A DNA stretch of 64,000 nucleotides from positions 62,001 through 126,000 of the forward strand of contig CM074820.1 of NCBI GenBank assembly GCA_037447605.1. The letters are read 5' to 3'. The notes under the pieces were generated by a model. The model was not told the origin of the DNA. It saw only the letters and a program-made list of their open reading frames with translations, and made no database searches. The translations under genes were made by a program, and so were the position numbers. Below, piece by piece: positions 10,749-21,600 of this stretch (the stretch's first letter is position 1; each line of letters begins with the position of its first letter). The stretch comes from Zygnema circumcarinatum SAG 698-1b (lineage: Eukaryota > Plantae > Zygnematophyceae).

Positions 10749-12634
10749 CTAGGACTGCAAGAAGCCGGTGGAGCAGGGGGAGCTCTTGTCCAGCCAGGCG
10801 AGGCACATGGCGGCTGTCCACGAGAAGTAGCTCCCTCCTGCTCCCGCCCCTGTGAGAGGGTCGTAGTACTCAAAGAGGCCGTGCGTGTTAATCAGGTCGC
10901 AGCTGTTCTGCTCAATGCGATCCGCCAAAGCGTCGTAGCCGTAGTGGCGCAGACCGTCCGTTATCATATAGTTCACTATCACCCTGCACATCCCACATCC
11001 ATCCGCTCAGAGGCCTTTCCAGAAAAGCACAACAGTTCCTTTCGAGCAATGGAGCGAGAAACAAAAAATAAGGTAAAAAATAGAGAATTCCGCGGAAGAT
11101 CCGGCAACTGTTCTCGGCTCGAACTGTTGTTCACAGACTCAACCTCCCCTTCCTCTCCGTTCAACAACAACCCACCATCGTCTCCCAAGCCCCTCCCAAA
11201 CCTACCCACCACTTCCACCATCTTTCACCACCCGCCCACTAGGGTTGTTCCCTCTTTATCCCAGGCACAGCCCCCACCCCCCGTCCAGCAGCTGTGCACC
11301 TACCACACAGGGCCGCGCCAGTAGCGCAGGGGCTCGAAGCCGGCGGCGGAGGGGTCCATGCTCGGCACGCCGTACTGCACGCAGTCCATCCACCGCGTGA
11401 GGGTGTCCGCCAGCGCCGCCGCCTGCGCAGGAGTTGCCACGTGCGCAAAGAGAGGGAGGAAGCCTGCTGACGTGGCGGCGGCGAGAGGCCGCCCCGCGAG
11501 CTGATCGTGGGAGCGGAAGATGCCGCTCTGCGCGTCCCAGAGGCGGGAGAAGGCCGCCTGCGCCTTGGCCAGCCACGTGTCAATCTCGGGGAGCGCCTCC
11601 AGGCAGCCAAGCTCCGCCGCGAGCCAGCGCAGGTCGAGGTTGGCGCGGTGCAGGACGGAGTTGGTGCAGAGGTCGGTGACGCGGAAGGGCGAGGCGTGGA
11701 AGAGGTGCGCGGGGCTGTAGTCGAGCGCGCGGAAGCGGTAGAGGAGCGTCAGGTACCGGTCGTACTCCGCCTGCTGGGGGCGCATGGCGGCGTCCACGTG
11801 GCCCAGGTCGCGGCGCGTGTAGGGCGGAATGGCGTCTACGGGCACACGGGCGAGGGGCTCGTCCCAGGCGGCGCTGTTGTCCATGCCGGACTCCCAGGGG
11901 TGCAGCGTGGCCACCAGCCCGCTGCCGAGGGGGTCACGCGCAGAGTAGAACCACCGGTGCGAGCGCAGCAGCCGCGGGAACAGCTCGCGCGCCTGCCGCA
12001 GCGCGAGCGGGCGGTCCTCGGCGCGCTCCAGCATGTGCCGTACGGCTATGGCGGCCACGGGCGGCTGCGTGATGCCTGTGCTGCCGCGCGGCTTCTCCGC
12101 GGAGCCCCAAATCTCGGGCCCGGGGAAGTAGGTGGAGCTGGCGGCGTGGAACACCACGTGCGGCACCATCCCGTCCTGCCACTGCGCGCCCATCAGCTTG
12201 CGGAGCTCCTCCCAGGCGCGCGACTCGTCAATGGCCGCCCAGCCCATGGCCACGAGCGCGGAGTCCCAGTTCCATTGGTAGGGGTACAGGCCGCGGGCGG
12301 GGATGGTGTACCCCCCGTAGTCGTTGCTGCGCAGGATGGCGGTCGCCTCGCCGATCACGTCCGCCTGCAGCGCGCGCCCCTCCGAGGGCCCCGCGCACCC
12401 ATCCAGCAGGGTGGAGAGGTCCGTCACGGATGTGGGGGACGCCGGGCACAGCTTCTCCAGACGCGGGGTGGACGCCCCCCCCCCTTCCTTCAGACTCACG
12501 CCCTCCACCGCCAGCCGCAAACTGCTCAGGGTGCGTGGAACGCGCGGGCTGGAGGGCTCCGAGCAGAGGGACGCCATGGAAAAGGAGTGCGGCAGGGCCA
12601 CAGGGCCCGCCATGTCTAACTGCGGCGGTGCCAT
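10749..12634 (-). CDS. GH63-family glycoside hydrolase (glucosylglycerate/mannosylglycerate hydrolase-like), two exons
   Basis: Motifs GGYTIP..LYPYQWNWDS, QWQDGMVPHVVF, HPWESGMDNS..WD, YWRGPVW and GLFEYYDPLTG..FSWTAA. A single GT-AG intron at ~10985-11302 splits the W codon of RGPVW. About 90 aa of N-terminal extension precede the catalytic domain. Confidence 0.9.
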
Positions 12635-12955
12635 GTTTTGCTGCAGCCGGCCCTTGCGGTCACCCTCGCCTGCCTTTGAGAGACGCCAGCTTCCTGCAAA
12701 GACCACCCAAACCAGCCAGAGCGAATGTGAGTGCCAAGAAGCAACGTTTCCATAGAAGCGAGAGCAGCACGAGGCGGCAGGATGGGCCGAACAGCAGCAG
12801 AAGCACGGGGGGGCGAGAGGGCGAAAGCAGGCGGGCAGGCAGGTGGGTGGGCGGGTACCTGGGCGAGCGGTGCGGGCGGAGGTAGCGAGGCGCTCGACGG
12901 GGGTTAAACGCCGCCCCGCCCCGCCCCGGCCCGCGGGCGCGCTGCCGCTCGCTTC

Positions 12956-13378
12956 GCCACGTGGCGGGGGGGCGCCACGTGGCGCGCGGCGAGAGGGCGC
13001 GCCGGTTCGGGCGCGGGGGGGCGCTTTCGGACGCGGCGGGCGGCGCGGGCTGACGTGGCGGATGGCGCAGGCCGCGGCCCAGGGCGCCCCGCGCCACGTG
13101 GCGCGCGGCGGCCCCTCCGCGCCCCGTCCTCCCCCGGCCGGCCGGCGACCACCACCACCCGATGGCCGGCCGCCCGTCCGCCCGGCCAGGCCCCCCCGCC
13201 ACCCACCGCGACCCGCCGCCCGCCACCCGCCACCCGCCACCCGCCACCCGCCAACCGCCCGCTTTGCTTCGCGGAAAACGACGCGCGCCGTGGCCCGCCC
13301 GCCCACCCGCCCGCACGCGGCGGCGTGGCGTGGCGTGGCGTGACGTGGCGTGGCGTCCGGATAGCGCCGTGACGTGAC
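12956..13378. promoter_or_regulatory. G-box/ABRE cluster upstream of the GH63 gene
   Basis: Palindromic GCCACGTGGC at 12956, 12974 and 13093; TGACGTGGC at 13051 and 13341; TGACGTGAC at 13370. All lie in a very GC-rich island. Confidence 0.6.
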
Positions 13379-13813
13379 GCGCCGTGACGCGACAGGCCCC
13401 TTGCCCTAGGTAAGAGGGTAAAGGCAGGGAGGGAGGGACGGACGGACGGAGGGATGGCTGGATGGATGGTAAGATCAAGATTGGCAGGGGCCGAGCCGGG
13501 GCCCGGGCCGGGCGGGGGCGTCCTTGCCTCCCTCCCTGGGCGAGGGCGAGGCCGAGAGCGAGAGCGGCGCGGTGCGGCCCACGCCCGCGCCCCCCCCGCG
13601 CCGTACGCCCTGCCCGGCCGTACGCCCGTCCGTACGCTCGTTCGGGCGGTCGCCGCACTCGCCGGGGTCGTTCCGAGTTCGTTTTGGCCCGGCCCGCCGG
13701 GGACGGCATGTACGGCCCGCCCCCCGGCAAGGGCCGGGGACCCCCCGCCTACCCGTCCCCCTGCCTGCGTGCACGCTGGTCGCAGGGCAGGGCAAGGCAA
13801 GGCAAGGTATGAC

Positions 13814-14665
13814 ATGGCTAAGCAAGCAACGGCCCGGGGGGGGGGGTGGTGGATGGGGTCCTGTCCTTGGTGTCCTGGTTTGGTGCGCGGGCGGGCGGAG
13901 CCGGGGGGGCACGGGAGGGCGTGCTCGCAGCCGACAGTGTTTGCGTGCTTGCTGGCTTGCGGGCTGCGGATGGATGCAGACCTGCACGTGGCCTGGGCTG
14001 GGCTGAGCAACTTCGCGCTGTCCGATAGCTCTGCCTTTGTTCGAACGCCACTTTTGTTAGCGGAGAATGCGCCGTTGGGAACCATGGTCGTGACGCAACA
14101 TTTTTCCACTTCGCTGGGTGGGACTGAAGCCCATCGGTTGTTTGAACGGCAATCTCCACTCTCTCCGCAGCGGGTCGTCTTGGGGCGTTGGCTGAGTTTG
14201 CTCTCGTCAACGTCCCTCGGAGCACTTCCTCTCCTCCCAGATCGGGGCGGGCGGCCGCGCAATGGCGCAAGGTGAGGCGGGTGTTGCTCGCATCGCGTGG
14301 CCCACATCTGAACCCCTAACCTTGCTTAAAATTGACCGCTGGCGGTTGCCCGCCGAGCACGGCTATGCATGTTGAATAAAGATACATGGTATCGCATGGA
14401 GGCTACCTTCTGCACTGGTGCATGCAACCCACAGTGCCGAAACAGGATTCTAAGGCTATACCAGTGGAACAAGTCAAAGAGAGCCACTTGAGCGACCATT
14501 TGCCTGTTCGGAAAATGCAGGACGTTAACTAAAAAATTCAAAAGTAGCACTTGCGCGTTCACAAGTCACACCACCACGTCACGCGCAGCCTTACATCCGA
14601 AGCACATGGAACCCCTCCCTGATGAGGGCGTTGTTCCATGGTCCAACTTCGTTCAACTGGACTGA
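13814..14665 (+). CDS. Candidate two-exon orphan protein (unrecognised)
   Basis: An open frame runs from ATG 13814 (or 13970) to a donor AG|GTGAGG at 14271/14272. A phase-compatible acceptor at 14565 continues HTTTSRAALHPKHMEPLPDEGVVPWSNFVQLD-stop (14665). No family motif recognised. Confidence 0.28.
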
Positions 14666-15236: not shown

Positions 15237-17915
15237 TTATGGCCTCCCTAAATCACCACCTGAGCTTTCTCTAGAACGGCATTTTCTTTCCGCATCGATC
15301 AACGCCAGAGCGGACTTCGCACTCTCGCAGCCTTGATCCGCCGCCTTTTGAAGCAGTTCTAAGGCGCGATTCATGTCTCTCGTAACACCATTACCGGTCA
15401 TGTACAATCGCCCTAAATTGTACTGGGCTGCAAAATCACCATTCTCAGCAGCCCTCGCATAAAGCTGAATGGCCTGTTCCATGTCCTTGGAGACTCCATC
15501 TCCGATCGCGTAGCACACAGCTAAATTGAACTGGGCATCCCGATTGCCATTCTCTGCAGCGTGCGTGTAAAGCTGAATGGCCTGTTCCATGTCCTTTGGG
15601 ACTCCATCTCCGCTCGCATAGCACCAAGCTAAAATGCACTGGGCATTACGATCACCATTCTCTGCACAGCGCGCATAAAGCTGAACGGCCTGTTCCATGT
15701 CCTTGGGGACTCCATCTCCCTTGTCGTAGCACACAGCTAAATTGAACTTGGCACCCCAATTGCCATTTTCTGCAGCGCGCTTGAAAAACTGAACGGCCTG
15801 TTCCATGTCCTTTGTGACTCCATCTCCGTTCTCGTAGCACCAAGCTAAATTGTACTGGGCCTCAGAATGGCCATTCTCAGCAGCCCTCGCATAAAGCTGA
15901 ATGGCCTGTTCCATGTCCTTGGAGACTCCATCTCCGACCGCGTAGCACACACCTAAATGGCACTGGGCCGCAAGATGGCCATTCTTAGCAGCGCGCGCAT
16001 AAAGCTGAACAGCCTGCTCCATGTCTTTGGGGACTCCATCTCCGTTCCTGTAGCACCTAGCTAAATTGACCTGGGCGTCAAGATGGCCATTCTCTGCAGC
16101 ACGCGCAAAAAGCTTTACGGCCTGTTCCATGTCCTCGGAGACTCCATCTCCGCTCGCATAGCACAGACCTAATTTGTACTGCGCCTTACTGTCTCCCTGA
16201 TCCGCCCTGCTCCTTAATTCACTGACTATCTTCTGCTCCTTAGAAGGCGAATCTTCTCCTTTTCTTTTTTCAGGTGCAGGCGTTTGTGCTGATCCTGTTG
16301 AATCGGGTTGCTTTCCCCTCTTTGCATCCTTCGCTGCTTTTTGCAATCGAGGCAGCACATCGCTCTCAAGACTGGGCCGAAAAGACCTCTCCTCGTTCAC
16401 GCATTGGAGTGCCACCTGAAGAGCTGCTTCCGTCGACTCCCGCTCCCACGCCCCTGCCCGCGGGTCTAGCTCCTTCATGAAGACAACTGTCAATTTATCC
16501 CAGTCGCGTTTAGGCTGACCTGGCCCGAAGCTCTCGAGGAGTCTATGGATGTTTTGAATCCTGTTGTCGCCCGTGAGCAGCTGCAAAATAACGACGCCGA
16601 GGGCGTACACGTCGGCAGTGCCTGTGAGCATTCCCTTTCGTGTCTCCGGCGTCATGCACCTATAAGGAGGAAGAAAGTGGGGGGGGTTAGGGAGATGAAT
16701 AAATCCCATCCCTACTAGTAAGAGAGGATGACGAGAAGGAGAACTCCTCAAGAAGCAACAAAATAGAGTGGAAAATGATGTACTCAAAAGTGCCTTGAAA
16801 ATGGCCTGTTTGGATTGTGCCATGGAACCTTTCAACCGGGCTCATGTCCGCCAGCTTGGAGGTGAGGTTCCCGTCCAATAGCACGTTCTCCGGCTTCAAT
16901 TCGCGGTGGATGATATCTTTCTGGTGCATGAACAGAAGAGCGGACGCCATCTCGGCACATATCCGGAGACGGTCCGCCCAACCAACGGGGGGATACTTGG
17001 CAGCAGGGTCTCTCAGGCGGTCCAAGAGGCTCCCTCCGCTCATGAGCTCGCTCACAAAGCAGCGCGCTTCGGGGCTCCATCCCATGAACTGCACAATGTG
17101 AGGATGGTGCAGCCGGCTTAAAGTCACCACCTCCTTCTCAAATCCTTTCGTGGACCTGCCCTCATGCAGCCTCTTTACTACCACAGCGGTGCCATATAGC
17201 ATGCCTTTGTAGACCGACCCAAAGGCTCCTTTTCCGAGCAGGTTTGTGTTGGAGAAATTGTCAGTAATCTCCACCATAAGGCTTTCCTGGAAGGTTTCAG
17301 GCATGGCCACTTTGGAAGCAAGAATTTCAATAGTCGTTTGAATACTGAGCACTTCCTGTCGACGATTGTCAGATACACTGTACGTTCCTGGTCCTCCAAC
17401 TCCGCCACGAACGCTTCGACCTGAGTGAGGACATGCCATCCGTTAACGTCAAAATCCCGAGTGGGAGCAAGCGAAGTTGTTGCTTTCCCTCGCAAATCCT
17501 CTCCAAGGAACCTTATGCTCACAGCCTAACAGAATACCCAACAAAACAAAGCCAAAGCTCCATGAAAAAAGCAAAGGCAAGATTCATTCTAAGTCTAATA
17601 CATTCCAGTGCAGATTACAACATATTTAAGAAAATCAATATTCTCCTATTCGTCACGCCTTCAATTTCACCTTACTCCCGAAAGCATCCTCAGCCCCTCC
17701 GAAACCCTGCTGCTATGACATTCGTCCAGCAAGCTGCAATGCAGCGGCCTCCTTCCCTCCCTCCCAAATGACCCCGCCATGCCTTCCCCTGACTTCCCCA
17801 GCCCATCCGCACCGCACAGTCGGCCTCCAAGAGTTTTGAAGCCTTCCGTACAGCCTGCCATCCCTACGGCAGCCGGCGCAGTCCGGCCGTGCCCGCCGAC
17901 AGACATTTCGGCCAT
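15237..17915 (-). CDS. RLK/Pelle (RLCK-IX-like) kinase domain with degenerate catalytic motifs fused to 8 C-terminal Sel1-like repeats
   Basis: Kinase motifs LGKGAFGSVYKG, VVVKRL, FEKEVVTLSRLHHPHIV, IIHRELKPENVLLD, KLADMS and DVYALGVVILQLLTG..LDPRAGAW..ALQC..RPSL..VLPRL. Intron 16660-16783 joins GTFE|CMTPE. Upstream introns (17526-17675 and a 65-nt intron 17356-17420 with a CTGAC branch site) and the ATG at 17915 are inferred. Confidence 0.85.
15330..16193 (-). repeat. Coding tandem repeat: 8 x 108 bp (36-aa Sel1-like repeats)
   Basis: The anchor CTCCATCTCC recurs at 15494, 15602, 15710, 15818, 15926, 16034 and 16142 (exact 108-bp spacing). Protein consensus is xxxAQxNLxxCYxxGDGVxKDMEQAxQLYARAAENG. 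Confidence 0.97.
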
Positions 17916-17976
17916 GGCCTACGGCAGCCGGTGCCCGCGCGGAAATAATACGTGCACAGGGCGGATCATTGGATCG

Positions 17977-18093
17977 GCAACCATTGGACAATCGTTGAAT
18001 TGTCAATGGTTGGACGTCCAATGGTTGGCAAGCAGTCGTATGTTTGGCAAGCATTGGATCCAATGGTTGGCAAGCACTTGATCCAAAGGTTGG
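17977..18093. promoter_or_regulatory. Array of CAA-N3-TTG inverted motifs (CCAATGGTTGG-like) in the kinase/ACC divergent promoter
   Basis: Seven copies at 17978, 17989, 18004, 18019, 18048, 18061 and 18084. A GGCCAATCA box at ~18241 and CACGTG at 18222 lie nearby. Regulatory function is inferred. Confidence 0.5.
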
Positions 18094-18680
18094 CAACCGG
18101 TCTCATGGTTGGTTTGATGGTCCCCGCCCCCCCGGTGAGTACGGTCCGTGTTCGAGCAGAGCCCGCCCGCCCGCCCTCGGAGGCCGCGCCGTCCCGTCCG
18201 CTGGCTGTCCCGGCGCCTCCGCACGTGTGAGGGCCCCAGCGGCCAATCAGCGGCCGCCACGCGAGAGGTCCTGTCGGTCGTCCGTCCGGTCGGTCGGTCG
18301 GTCGGTCAGGCGCGGACAGGAGCTGCGTCACGTCACGCGGTCACGCATGCTGGCGCTGGGACGGACGACGGTCTGACCGGCGGCCATGGCCGCGCCGCCT
18401 CGCCTGCTCGCGGTGATAGGGGAAGGCCCCCCCCCTCCCGCTGTAGGCCTCTGGTGTTCATCACCGCCTCAGAGAGGTGTTCATCATCTCTTCTGACGCA
18501 CGGAGACCGTCTGCGCTAGAATCGAAAGCTGTTTTTGCACACCCAAAGACTACCTTTCTTCCTCATATAGAATATTTTGAATCCAGCTGTTCGTGTAAAA
18601 CTTTCGTTTTTACTAAAGGATAATTCAGGTTATCTCTAATATTTCAAATTACAAGTCTCTTCTTTCCGGTCTACTCTGCC

Positions 18681-21600
18681 ATGGCTCCAGGCTGCCCACT
18701 TGATGCATTTAGCTTTGCACAGCAGGGCGGGGGTGGCTCTGCGACTTGCAGTGTGAAGATGGGCATCCAGGAGCAGACGCAGATCGATGGGAACGGTCGC
18801 ACCACGCAGCAGCTAGAGGAGTTTTGCAACATTATGGGAGGGGCCCCTATAAAGAGCGTCCTGGTGGCCAATAACGGGATTGCTGCAGTCAAGTTCATTC
18901 GGAGCATTCGCATGTGGTCGTACCAGACATTCGGAAATGAACGGTGAGTTGTGTGGGAAATTAACCAAAACGAAAAAAATCGAGGAAACATCTGAGGCGT
19001 GTGCCTCTGATTGCATAACAAATGGTTACAATTTTCTGGTAGGAAGTGAACAGATTCAAGCACATTCATTACCCCTCACGAAAACTTGCCAGCACGTGAA
19101 AGGCTCGTTCTTTTTTTTATCCACACTGATTTGAAAACTGAATAATAGAGGATGTCCCCATATCCGGAATCCTCTCCATCTCACGGGCTCATTTTTGGGA
19201 AATTTCTATTTTTTCTTCACGATGTAGGACAATCACATTGGTCGCCATGGCCACACCCGAAGACATGCGCATAAATGCAGAGCACATCCGGCTGGCTGAT
19301 CAGTTTGTGGAGGTTCCAGGAGGAACCAATAACAACAACTACGCTAATGTACAGCTAATTGTTGGGGTGAGTTGACCATGTATAGTATGCATTCTGGGAC
19401 AACAGAATCATCGTGGTTTTTGTGAAAGAGAATACAATCCTGTTGACTTTTGGCATCACTACTGTGATGTGCAGGTGGCAGAACGCATGAAAATTGATGC
19501 AGTTTGGCCTGGATGGGGCCATGCCTCTGAAGTGCCTGCCTTGCCAGAGGCCCTTTCACAACATGGCATAAAGTTCCTCGGACCGCCCGCTGCACCAATG
19601 GCCGCGCTCGGCGACAAGATCGGCTCGTCCATCATCGCGCAGTCAGCCGGAGTGCCGACAGTGGAGTGGAGCGGAAGCAAGGCAGGAAACCAGACCCCTT
19701 GCAAGCAGAAATACGTTGACGAATAAGAGTGTGTGGAATTGGCTTGCAGTGGACGCACAAGAACAGCTGCAACAAGGAGGTGCAGACAACTGAAGCCGGT
19801 TTCGTGGCGCAGGTCATACTGTCGCGGGAGAAATGCAGCGAGCCGATTCCGGATTCCGTGTACCGGCGCGCGTGTGTGCACACAACGGAGGAAGCACTCG
19901 CCGCGTGCGCCAAAATCGGATACCCGGCGATGATCAAGGCGTCCTGGGGGGGCGGAGGGAAGGGCATCCGGAAAGTGAGCCCCGTGATCAGTACTGTTGA
20001 GAGCGACAACAGGGTCTGACCTAGTCATTGAGCGAATGCATATGTCGACGACTGCCACTCGTTACATTGTCGCCATATTCAAACTTCGAATGCGTCATGT
20101 CAACCGTTGTGCTTTCTCTGATGGTATTCAGAACCTTGGTTTTGCATGTCGGAAATGACAGAGAAACGTATGCTCAGTGTAGGATGTTCCTTTTGGCAGG
20201 TGCAAAACCAGGAGGATGTGCGGAATCTCTTTAAGCAAGTGCAAGGGGAAGTGCCGGGTTCACCAATTTTCATGATGAAGTTGGCGACGCAGGTCTGTCA
20301 GATTGGACTGATTCTTTCCACTCTTTCCACCCTGAAGAAATGTTATAGCTATGTTGTTCTTTATGAAGCGTTGAAACGTTTCCAAGCTGGAACTTATAGT
20401 ACGTTGCCGTTGACAACGTTGTTGGTGCTTTACTATTGGCAGTGCCGCCACTTGGAAGTGCAGCTTGTGTGCGATGTGTATGGGAACGTGGCGGCCCTTC
20501 ATTCCCGCGACTGTTCTGTGCAGCGCCGCCATCAAAAGGTGCAACCAGTCGACCTGAAGGATTTTTGCTTGGTCAAACCACAGAAACCGTGAACTTGTTG
20601 TAGACTGTCTCTTTTCCTAACCCCACCCCCTTCCCTGTCTTGAATAGTACCCCAAGCATTCAAACTACGTCTTGTCCAAGTCAGCAATACTCTAAACGTG
20701 CTCGAGTTCCATTTACATGGAGCAGATTGTCGAGGAGGGACCCATCACGGTAGCTCCGCAGGAGACCATTCGCGAGCTGGAGAGGGGGGCGTGCCGCTTG
20801 GCGGCGTCTGTGGGATACGTCGGCGCCGCGACGGTGGAATACCTCTACAGCATGGAGACGGGGCAGTTCTTCTTCCTCGAGCTCAACCCTCGCTTGCAGG
20901 TGCGGAAGAAAGCATGAAGGAGACAATTGCGGTTTCAGCGAGTCGTTGCAACTGTGAACTACTCGGAAACTAAACCAATGCACGTATCCCGGTTTGCTTT
21001 TCTACGCCAGGTGGAGCATCCGGTGACAGAGTGGATAGCCAATGTGAACTTGCCGGCAACGCAGCTCATGATCGCGATGGGCATCCCTCTCTGGCGGATG
21101 CCTGGTAAGTTTGTGTACAGCTCTGAGCCACGAGTCTCAGAATGCAAGCGTCATTTCAAACACATAGCAGCAAGCGTCTCTCTGCACGGCAATTCCTTCG
21201 AACATGCAGAGTCTGCAGGTCAATGAGCGCGCCCTTCCCTGCGGCGTTTGCCCATGCAGAAATTCGGCGGCTGTACGGGCAGCCTTCAGGGGGCGGCCTG
21301 CACACGTGGCGGCAGGCCCATTGCGCGCTGCCCTTCTCCTTCCCGGAGGCGCAGCAGACGCCCCCGCGCGGCCACGTGGTGGCCGTGCGCGTAACCAGCG
21401 AGGACCCCGAGGACGGCTTCAAGCCCACCACCGGCCGCATTCAGGTGCGCCGCTATCCTCTCCTGCACCCGCCATACAACCATCTTCCTTTTCCATCCCT
21501 TTCCCGGGAGACAAGACATTGTACTTACTCGTTTTGTCACGTTCACACTTACGTTGCAGGAATTGAGCTTCCGCAGCAAGCCAGACGTGTGGGCCTACTT

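Follow-up and report, generated by a model that had tools for sequence, protein, structure and literature searches.

A bare kinase-Sel1 gene in the streptophyte alga Zygnema circumcarinatum, encoding a probable weak kinase or pseudokinase

Signalling and immunity in plants have their backbone in kinases of the receptor-like kinase (RLK)/Pelle family, and it is an open question by which route these kinases gained their partner modules prior to the colonisation of land. In PUB-VI/RLCK-IXb, a group of receptor-like cytoplasmic kinases (RLCKs) that is linked to immunity, a UspA domain and a helical domain are followed by a kinase and a U-box, and two Arabidopsis members are predicted pseudokinases that lack the Asp of the HRD motif (bioRxiv 10.64898/2026.02.10.704836; PMC12803775). 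Kinase and Sel1-like families are also known as expanded accessory genes in Rhizophagus (PMC8647823). Moreover, IRAK-M/IRAK3, ZED1/ZRK and RLCK-XII-2 are IRAK/Pelle folds in which a catalytic residue has been lost and which act as regulators or scaffolds. A literature search for RLK/Pelle kinases fused to Sel1 repeats in streptophyte algae found no paper. Here, such a fusion is described from Zygnema circumcarinatum SAG 698-1b, at positions 15237-17439 on the minus strand of a stretch of 64,000 nucleotides (contig CM074820.1 of assembly GCA_037447605.1, positions 62,001 to 126,000), which is referred to as the window and to which all coordinates refer.

The gene is predicted to encode an intact, soluble kinase-like protein that consists of a bare kinase-Sel1 cassette, in which the HRD motif reads HRE and the DFG motif reads DMS. 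We give an even chance to the interpretation that this gene, intact and with nothing but the kinase-Sel1 cassette, belongs to an alga-specific family of modular design, and that its product has lost normal catalysis and acts as an adaptor or regulator. Two minus-strand open reading frames (ORFs) in different frames span the gene. The upstream ORF (16687-17439, 250 aa) matched Pkinase/PK_Tyr_Ser-Thr in Pfam (E 7e-26 to 1e-25, profile positions 4-146 of 258), and the downstream ORF (15237-16835, 532 aa) matched Sel1 in eight stretches (E 3e-88). A first-pass annotation of the locus had proposed a kinase followed by a linker and eight Sel1 repeats instead of a U-box, and had named a search for the domain architecture as a check. 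That search returned a kinase and then eight Sel1 repeats, and no U-box was detected on either exon.

The two ORFs are joined by a predicted intron of 124 nt (16660-16783, GT...AG, phase 2), which was found by listing all GT-AG pairs that restore the frame without a stop codon. The pair of donor 16783 and acceptor 16660 is the only one of these that also keeps the length of the activation segment of the family (GTFE-CMTPE, as compared to GTxGYIDPE), a pyrimidine-rich tract precedes the AG, and the tblastn alignments of the relatives split precisely at this intron. In the adjoining acetyl-CoA carboxylase (ACC) gene, an intron of at most ~180 nt separates two exons whose matches are contiguous on the Carboxyl_trans profile, and a size of 124 nt can therefore be regarded as ordinary for this genome. 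Reading past the donor (16777-16786) gives GTFEYI, which is closer to the GTxGYI of the family than the spliced GTFECM, and the sequence following the donor (GTACATC) resembles that following the acceptor (GTGCATG; 16650-16662). These features may hint that the intron was gained through a small tandem duplication, or they may be due to chance.

The kinase exon (16784-17439) runs from the ATG at 17439-17437 into the activation loop, where it ends in GTFE with the last codon split as GA and G, in the frame that is preferred by codon usage. It encodes ~48 non-conserved N-terminal residues followed by the N-lobe, the catalytic loop and the activation loop. The second exon (16659-15240) comprises 473 codons, which specify the kinase C-lobe, a disordered linker and the eight Sel1 repeats, and is closed by the stop codon TAA read from the ORF at 15237-15239. 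Since the C-lobe and the repeats share this single uninterrupted ORF, the fusion of kinase and Sel1 array does not depend on the splice prediction. The motifs on which the first-pass annotation had based its recognition of the C-lobe (DVYALGVVILQLLTG, LDP, ALQC, RP and VLP) all fall within exon 2 and share its ORF with the repeats. In an AlphaFold model of exon 2 (mean predicted local distance difference test score, pLDDT, of 89), the C-lobe (16317-16659), with TPE, the DVYALG of helix alpha-F, LDP...W and the RP of helix alpha-I, has helices modelled at pLDDT 70-92. The linker (16242-16316) is rich in Lys, Glu, Ser and Pro, has no Pfam match and is predicted to be disordered, with pLDDT below 50 for residues 117-136 of the model. 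The database searches and the tree were, like the structure model, made exon by exon.

By its closest relatives, the kinase can be assigned to the IRAK/RLK-Pelle type of the tyrosine kinase-like (TKL) group. The solved structures closest to exon 1 in sequence are those of IRAK1, BAK1, Pto, BRI1, a LysM receptor kinase and IRAK4, and its neighbours in the Atlas are Streptophyta kinases. A word search with the C-lobe retrieved two proteins only, both of which are U-box kinases of Rhynchospora (38% identity). The earlier assignment as an RLK/Pelle kinase with a C-lobe like that of the U-box kinases is borne out by these matches, headed by IRAK1, BAK1 and Pto for exon 1 and confined to U-box kinases for the C-lobe. 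Plant U-box kinases, including Arabidopsis PUB32-35 and PUB50-53, are of the same broad kinase type, and they share with the family alignment the DVG/DMG variant of DFG, a GTxxYxDPE activation loop and a C-terminal module behind the kinase. The Zygnema gene differs from them in lacking the UspA domain, the long alpha-helical domain and the U-box, with eight Sel1 repeats in the position of the latter.

The nearest relatives of the kinase are algal. In an exhaustive HMMER search with exon 1, the top ranks were taken by multi-kinase proteins with summed scores, and the matches to single domains are the informative ones; the nearest of these are algal proteins with 50-54% identity to the kinase. 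Algal kin scored 135-171 bits, algal U-box kinases 117-121 bits, land-plant PUB kinases 89-107 bits, other RLK subfamilies 52-80 bits and non-RLK kinase-Sel1 proteins 15-42 bits. The C-lobe by itself ranks the same algal relatives first, so both exons place the kinase alike. Four of the relatives, P0273, P0277, P0185 and P0155, are known as transcript assemblies alone, and form one clade with the gene. P0185, P0273 and P0277 have the same order of kinase, linker and Sel1 array with eight repeats, P0155 has a long spacer between the kinase and its Sel1 repeats, and all four keep HRD and DMG or DVG where the gene has HRE and DMS. The gene is not a one-off, as its cassette is also present in transcripts from other organisms.

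In several relatives the kinase is joined to further modules. P0273, a longer cluster mate of P0185, is a protein of 1137 aa with a RING domain, TRAF-type zinc fingers, the kinase and eight Sel1 repeats, and P0277 shares this layout; in both, the RING and TRAF fingers are part of ~450 N-terminal residues that have no counterpart in the gene. These two proteins thus carry a TRAF6-like module and an IRAK-like kinase fused in one chain with eight Sel1 repeats. P0175 combines TRAF fingers with a kinase, and P0268 and P0272 are kinase and U-box proteins of Closterium. The related transcripts were drawn from the Logan runs SRR8128902-08 and from EukProt Trinity ids, the latter including P0277. P0273 is found as single ORFs on contigs of ~4.5 kb in several runs of one sequencing series (L006:406-3819, L007:221-3634), which we interpret as transcript assemblies in view of their length and the one ORF on each.

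The first-pass annotation had also proposed a kinase phylogeny, and a maximum-likelihood tree was built from exon 1 (43 rows, 176 columns). The kinase of the gene falls inside an RLK-containing node (98/96) and within a clade with six algal sequences (90/86), as the sister of P0220 (95/91), and its terminal branch of 0.5 equals the median. Other RLK subfamilies form a clade of their own (100/99), and land-plant PUB kinases another, together with two algal sequences; the algal clade that holds the gene is placed in a polytomy outside this land-plant PUB-kinase clade. Taken with the search scores, the best explanation is an algal clade of kinases allied to the plant U-box kinases. The gene shares with the algal kinase-Sel1 proteins both the clustering of its kinase and the Sel1 array behind it, whereas membership of PUB-VI/RLCK-IXb does not fit with Sel1 repeats after the kinase and just ~48 non-conserved residues before it.

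Kinase-Sel1 proteins from outside the algae resemble the gene in domain order. Rhizophagus irregularis P0117 has a TKL-type kinase followed by Sel1 repeats and belongs to an expanded accessory family, in agreement with the earlier statement that such fusions occur in Glomeromycota, where the family expansions have been described (PMC8647823). However, its kinase reaches no more than 27.5 bits against exon 1, whereas the algal kin reach 135-171 bits. In the tree, the kinase-Sel1 proteins of Rhizophagus and Tritrichomonas are on very long branches that are not resolved; these fusions are likely to be independent in origin as judged from the scores, the tree giving no proof, and for Rhizophagus an independent fusion is probable in the same sense. 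Bacterial kinase-Sel1 proteins (e.g., P0021, P0072 Akkermansia) have the same domain order and consensus-like Sel1 arrays with 38-46% identity, but their kinases are of the Hanks type, score 15-42 bits, are unrelated in detail and are located across the root, on the far side of the tree. The Sel1 exon was also tried as a probe for orthologues, but consensus-like Sel1 proteins, the majority of them from bacteria, dominated the matches, and their kinase parts are unrelated; its most similar match, P0004 (53% identity), lies on a contig of bacterial type.

No U-box (at E 0.01), RING, TRAF finger, UspA or helical bundle was detected in either exon by Pfam, and the 1.2 kb upstream of the gene contain no Pfam match and neither an E3-ligase nor a four-helix-bundle module. 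Remnants of RING or TRAF modules were looked for in 1.4 kb (17300-18700) with the N-terminal modules of the relatives, and even a threshold of E 10 yielded none. Within the window, tblastn detected no other copy of the family. The predicted absence of a transmembrane helix was upheld by hydropathy analysis: the highest Kyte-Doolittle mean over 19 residues is 1.64 and is reached on the alpha-F helix of the kinase, which is the sole hydrophobic segment, at variance with a membrane-bound RLK.

The catalytic centre, in which the first-pass annotation had overlooked the substitutions, combines conserved and altered elements. The glycine-rich loop, GKGAFGS (17215-17235), is intact, and K89, identified from the family alignment as the VAIK-type Lys (17173-17175), is invariant across that alignment, as are E103 of alpha-C, H178, R179 and N185. 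The Lys, Glu and Asn and the Asp of DFG are thus kept, but HRD is replaced by HRE (16900-16908), with the codon GAA at 16900-16902 in the place of the catalytic Asp (Glu180), and DFG, which is DMG or DVG in the family, is replaced by DMS (16840-16848), with Ser instead of Gly (S200). The gene therefore reads HRELKPEN where its relatives read HRDLKPAN, and a single transversion separates the GAA codon from an Asp codon. HRD is present in every close relative but P0220, in which the motif reads HRN. Among 361 aligned kinase domains, i.e., all kinase domains gathered that cover both motifs, Glu at the position of the HRD Asp was not found once, HRD being present in 245 and Asn being the commonest loss. 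DMS was likewise absent from all 361, and DFS was present in five. Because of the combination of HRE and DMS, and of a Glu that none of the 361 domains has at this position, the protein is probably a weak kinase or a pseudokinase scaffold.

An active kinase would have to employ Glu180 as its catalytic base and DMS for the coordination of Mg-ATP, with the Sel1 array recruiting substrates or docking the kinase on a complex. This is unlikely in our judgement, even though the G-loop, K89, E103, N185 and the DFG Asp are accompanied by a conserved GT, TPE, alpha-F Asp and alpha-I Arg, the close relatives with HRD and DMG or DVG look competent, and the branch length is ordinary. Asp-to-Glu substitution at the catalytic base of other kinases cuts activity by orders of magnitude, and an active enzyme would have to accommodate not only a residue without precedent among the 361 domains but also the change of the DFG Gly in a second motif. 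The sister sequence points in the same direction, since P0220, a EukProt transcript, is a plain pseudokinase with HRN, NME and a degenerate G-loop, which suggests a small subclade of catalytically dead kinases. P0220 has 1522 residues with a long low-complexity tail after the kinase, and is without Sel1 repeats.

The 5' end of the gene was delimited from sequence features. An in-frame TAA (17443-17445) directly precedes the ATG at 17439, the homology with the family starts near 17310 in tblastn searches with the relatives, and P0155 and P0220 likewise start merely ~10-30 residues ahead of the kinase. The simplest gene model starts at this ATG, with a putative 5' end and a protein of ~690 residues. 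The first-pass annotation had extended the interval to 17915; the part from 15237 to 17439 is retained as the gene, and the remainder (17440-17915) is considered to be 5' untranslated region or promoter, or to contain extra exons that lack support. This remainder has no Pfam match, no similarity to the N-termini of the relatives (best E 0.5) and no frame preference in codon usage, which both real exons do show. As candidate coding exons, an ORF at 17667-17915 and a stretch in frame B at 17421-17528 were rejected, as neither domain, homology nor codon-usage frame preference was found for them, and nothing supports a 65-nt intron (17420-17356) that would join frame B to the kinase frame.

The truncated N-terminus and the altered motifs could also be explained by decay, the gene then being a 5'-truncated duplicate of a paralogue with RING/TRAF or bundle modules, which has lost these modules and the catalytic Asp and has little or no expression. 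This alternative, which we regard as distinctly unlikely, would account for the absence of the ~450 additional N-terminal residues of the relatives, for the damage in two catalytic motifs, for the lack of a matching protein or ORF on record and for the first 48 codons being without clear frame preference. It is difficult to reconcile with ~690 codons that are open over two exons with canonical splice sites, or with eight repeats in perfect register without indels and a ratio of nonsynonymous to synonymous divergence (dN/dS) of 0.24 in the repeat scaffold. Moreover, P0155 and P0220 also start just ahead of the kinase, and the structural residues of the kinase are intact. As the terminal branch equals the median, there is no sign of runaway decay. 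With all fold landmarks kept and a branch that is not accelerated, the pattern agrees better with a kinase fold that is retained but impaired in catalysis than with one in decay.

Several observations weigh against the interpretation of the gene as an intact family member without normal catalysis. Glu retains a carboxylate, and to judge from the sequence residual activity is possible. The first 48 codons after the ATG not only lack a clear frame preference, but another frame is slightly favoured by codon usage. Neither a transcript nor a protein of the gene was found in the databases: exact look-ups of three plausible ORF products found none on record, and exon 2 had no close match among the proteins of 260-828 residues in a large collection, the best being a bacterial protein with 53% identity. 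Finally, the tree covers exon 1 only. The missing database proteins are at most a weak sign of low expression.

The Sel1 array (15321-16184) consists of eight tandem repeats of exactly 36 residues each, in perfect register and without indels, and is preceded by a capping helix (~16200-16241). Tandem Repeats Finder described the array as 7.1 copies of a 108-bp unit, with indels at 0%. Units 1-7 share 58-81% identity at the protein level and 77-92% at the DNA level, and unit 8 is a divergent cap. Sel1-like repeat solenoids are defined by tandem 36-residue units with the A..LG..Y..G.GV..D...A..W/Y..AA..G signature that fold as helix pairs, and the array can be assigned to this class; it is modelled as paired helices (pLDDT 95-98), with an extra capping helix on either side. 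Solved Sel1 proteins (6ok3, EsiB 4bwr, SEL1L and HcpC) match by sequence (E 2e-126).

Units 1-7 differ from each other mainly at positions 3, 4, 7, 10, 11, 27 and 34-36 of the unit, and the first five of these share a face of the modelled helix A. For the 27 scaffold codons, dN/dS is 0.24, which argues for purifying selection since the duplication of the repeats. For the nine variable codons, dN amounts to 0.71-0.76, compared to an overall dS of 0.32. As these nine codons were picked post hoc, a neutral star-tree simulation was used in which the top nine were picked likewise; it gave a dN of 0.65 +/- 0.08 and reached the observed 0.76 in 6.5% of runs. The raw ratio is high but insignificant against the neutral simulation, and it does not demonstrate positive selection on the repeat surface. 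The same positions are those at which Sel1 repeats generally vary according to the alignment consensus. The scaffold thus appears clearly constrained and the surface free to vary. The mean identity within the array is 0.62, compared to 0.34-0.47 in the arrays of the relatives, and a search for positional orthology with the repeats of the relatives found no repeat-by-repeat correspondence. From this homogeneity and lack of correspondence we conclude that the array was rebuilt recently in this lineage by internal duplication or unequal exchange.

These patterns bear on the proposal of the first-pass annotation that a variable ligand-binding solenoid is coupled to a signalling domain, i.e., that the protein is an intracellular sensor of the immune type, in which the Sel1 surface would diversify towards variable ligands and the kinase would signal. 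The clustering of variation at positions 3, 4, 7, 10 and 11 on the face of helix A and at 34-36, the elevated dN of the variable codons and the recent homogenisation of the array are in line with such a sensor, and a tie to immunity has been described for the RLCK-IXb relatives in land plants (bioRxiv 10.64898/2026.02.10.704836; PMC12803775). However, the variability of the Sel1 surface is insignificant in the simulation with the same post-hoc choice and falls at positions that are generally variable in Sel1 repeats, and phosphorylation as an output is doubtful, and an immune sensor is therefore a very unlikely reading to us.

The gene, which in the proposal of the first-pass annotation would be an accessory gene inserted between housekeeping genes, is flanked by two genes, both of which had been recognised in that annotation and were confirmed. 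Downstream, on the same strand, an MGH1-like hydrolase gene of family GH63 is present at 11.3-12.6 kb; its mannosylglycerate-hydrolase domain (11303-12640, minus strand, Pfam E 1e-88) ends at profile position 297 of 356, and at least one more GH63 exon is therefore expected further downstream. A block of 74% G+C (12700-14300), full of short tandem repeats with periods of 5-22 and with spurious long ORFs on both strands, lies on the 3' side of the kinase-Sel1 gene, between it and the GH63 gene. On the opposite strand, a multi-exon gene for homomeric ACC begins 1.2 kb upstream and extends to ~30.5 kb. The 1.2-kb divergent intergenic region between the kinase-Sel1 and ACC genes contains 3.7 copies of a 23-bp unit, TCCAATGGTTGGCAAGCATGA, at 18017-18096, each with a palindromic core resembling CCAAT/ATTGG. 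As these repeats lie between two divergent genes, they could be a putative shared promoter element.

Taken as the interpretation to which we gave an even chance, the gene would be the smallest form in a modular family of algae whose other members combine the kinase-Sel1 cassette with modules of the RING/TRAF-finger, U-box or helical-bundle kind. The fold keeps the residues expected to bind nucleotide (G-loop, Lys, alpha-C Glu, Asn and DFG Asp), and the protein would be mainly a non-catalytic or weakly catalytic adaptor, in which the flexible linker ties the kinase fold to the Sel1 solenoid. The solenoid may hold a partner protein on that side of its A helices which is exposed, and the kinase-like domain may bind nucleotide and pair with active paralogues, in the way that IRAK-M or pseudokinase RLCKs regulate their active kin. 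The resemblance to these proteins would be one of mode and not of membership, as the gene has no death domain and carries Glu rather than Asn, Ser or a gap. The analysis shows the architecture, the family placement, the substituted residues and the recent homogenisation of the repeats; the loss of activity, the adaptor role and the partners are what we infer.

The gene by itself is a moderately interesting member of its family. A wider proposal would be that streptophyte algae possess an NLR-independent system resembling innate immunity, in which a kinase of the IRAK/Pelle type, ligase modules (TRAF6-like RING/zinc-finger or U-box) and Sel1 arrays that recognise ligands and are rapidly reshuffled constitute a one-chain analogue of animal IRAK-TRAF6, with the bare HRE copy as an IRAK-M-like pseudokinase regulator or decoy; we put this forward as a long shot. 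Algae that are allied to the land plants carry a Sel1 solenoid where land plants carry a U-box, and the cassette exists in bare form with a dismantled catalytic centre, beside relatives that are fused to TRAF-like E3 modules. If the family is indeed a system for sensing or ubiquitin signalling, this gene would be a natural candidate for a regulator or decoy within it.

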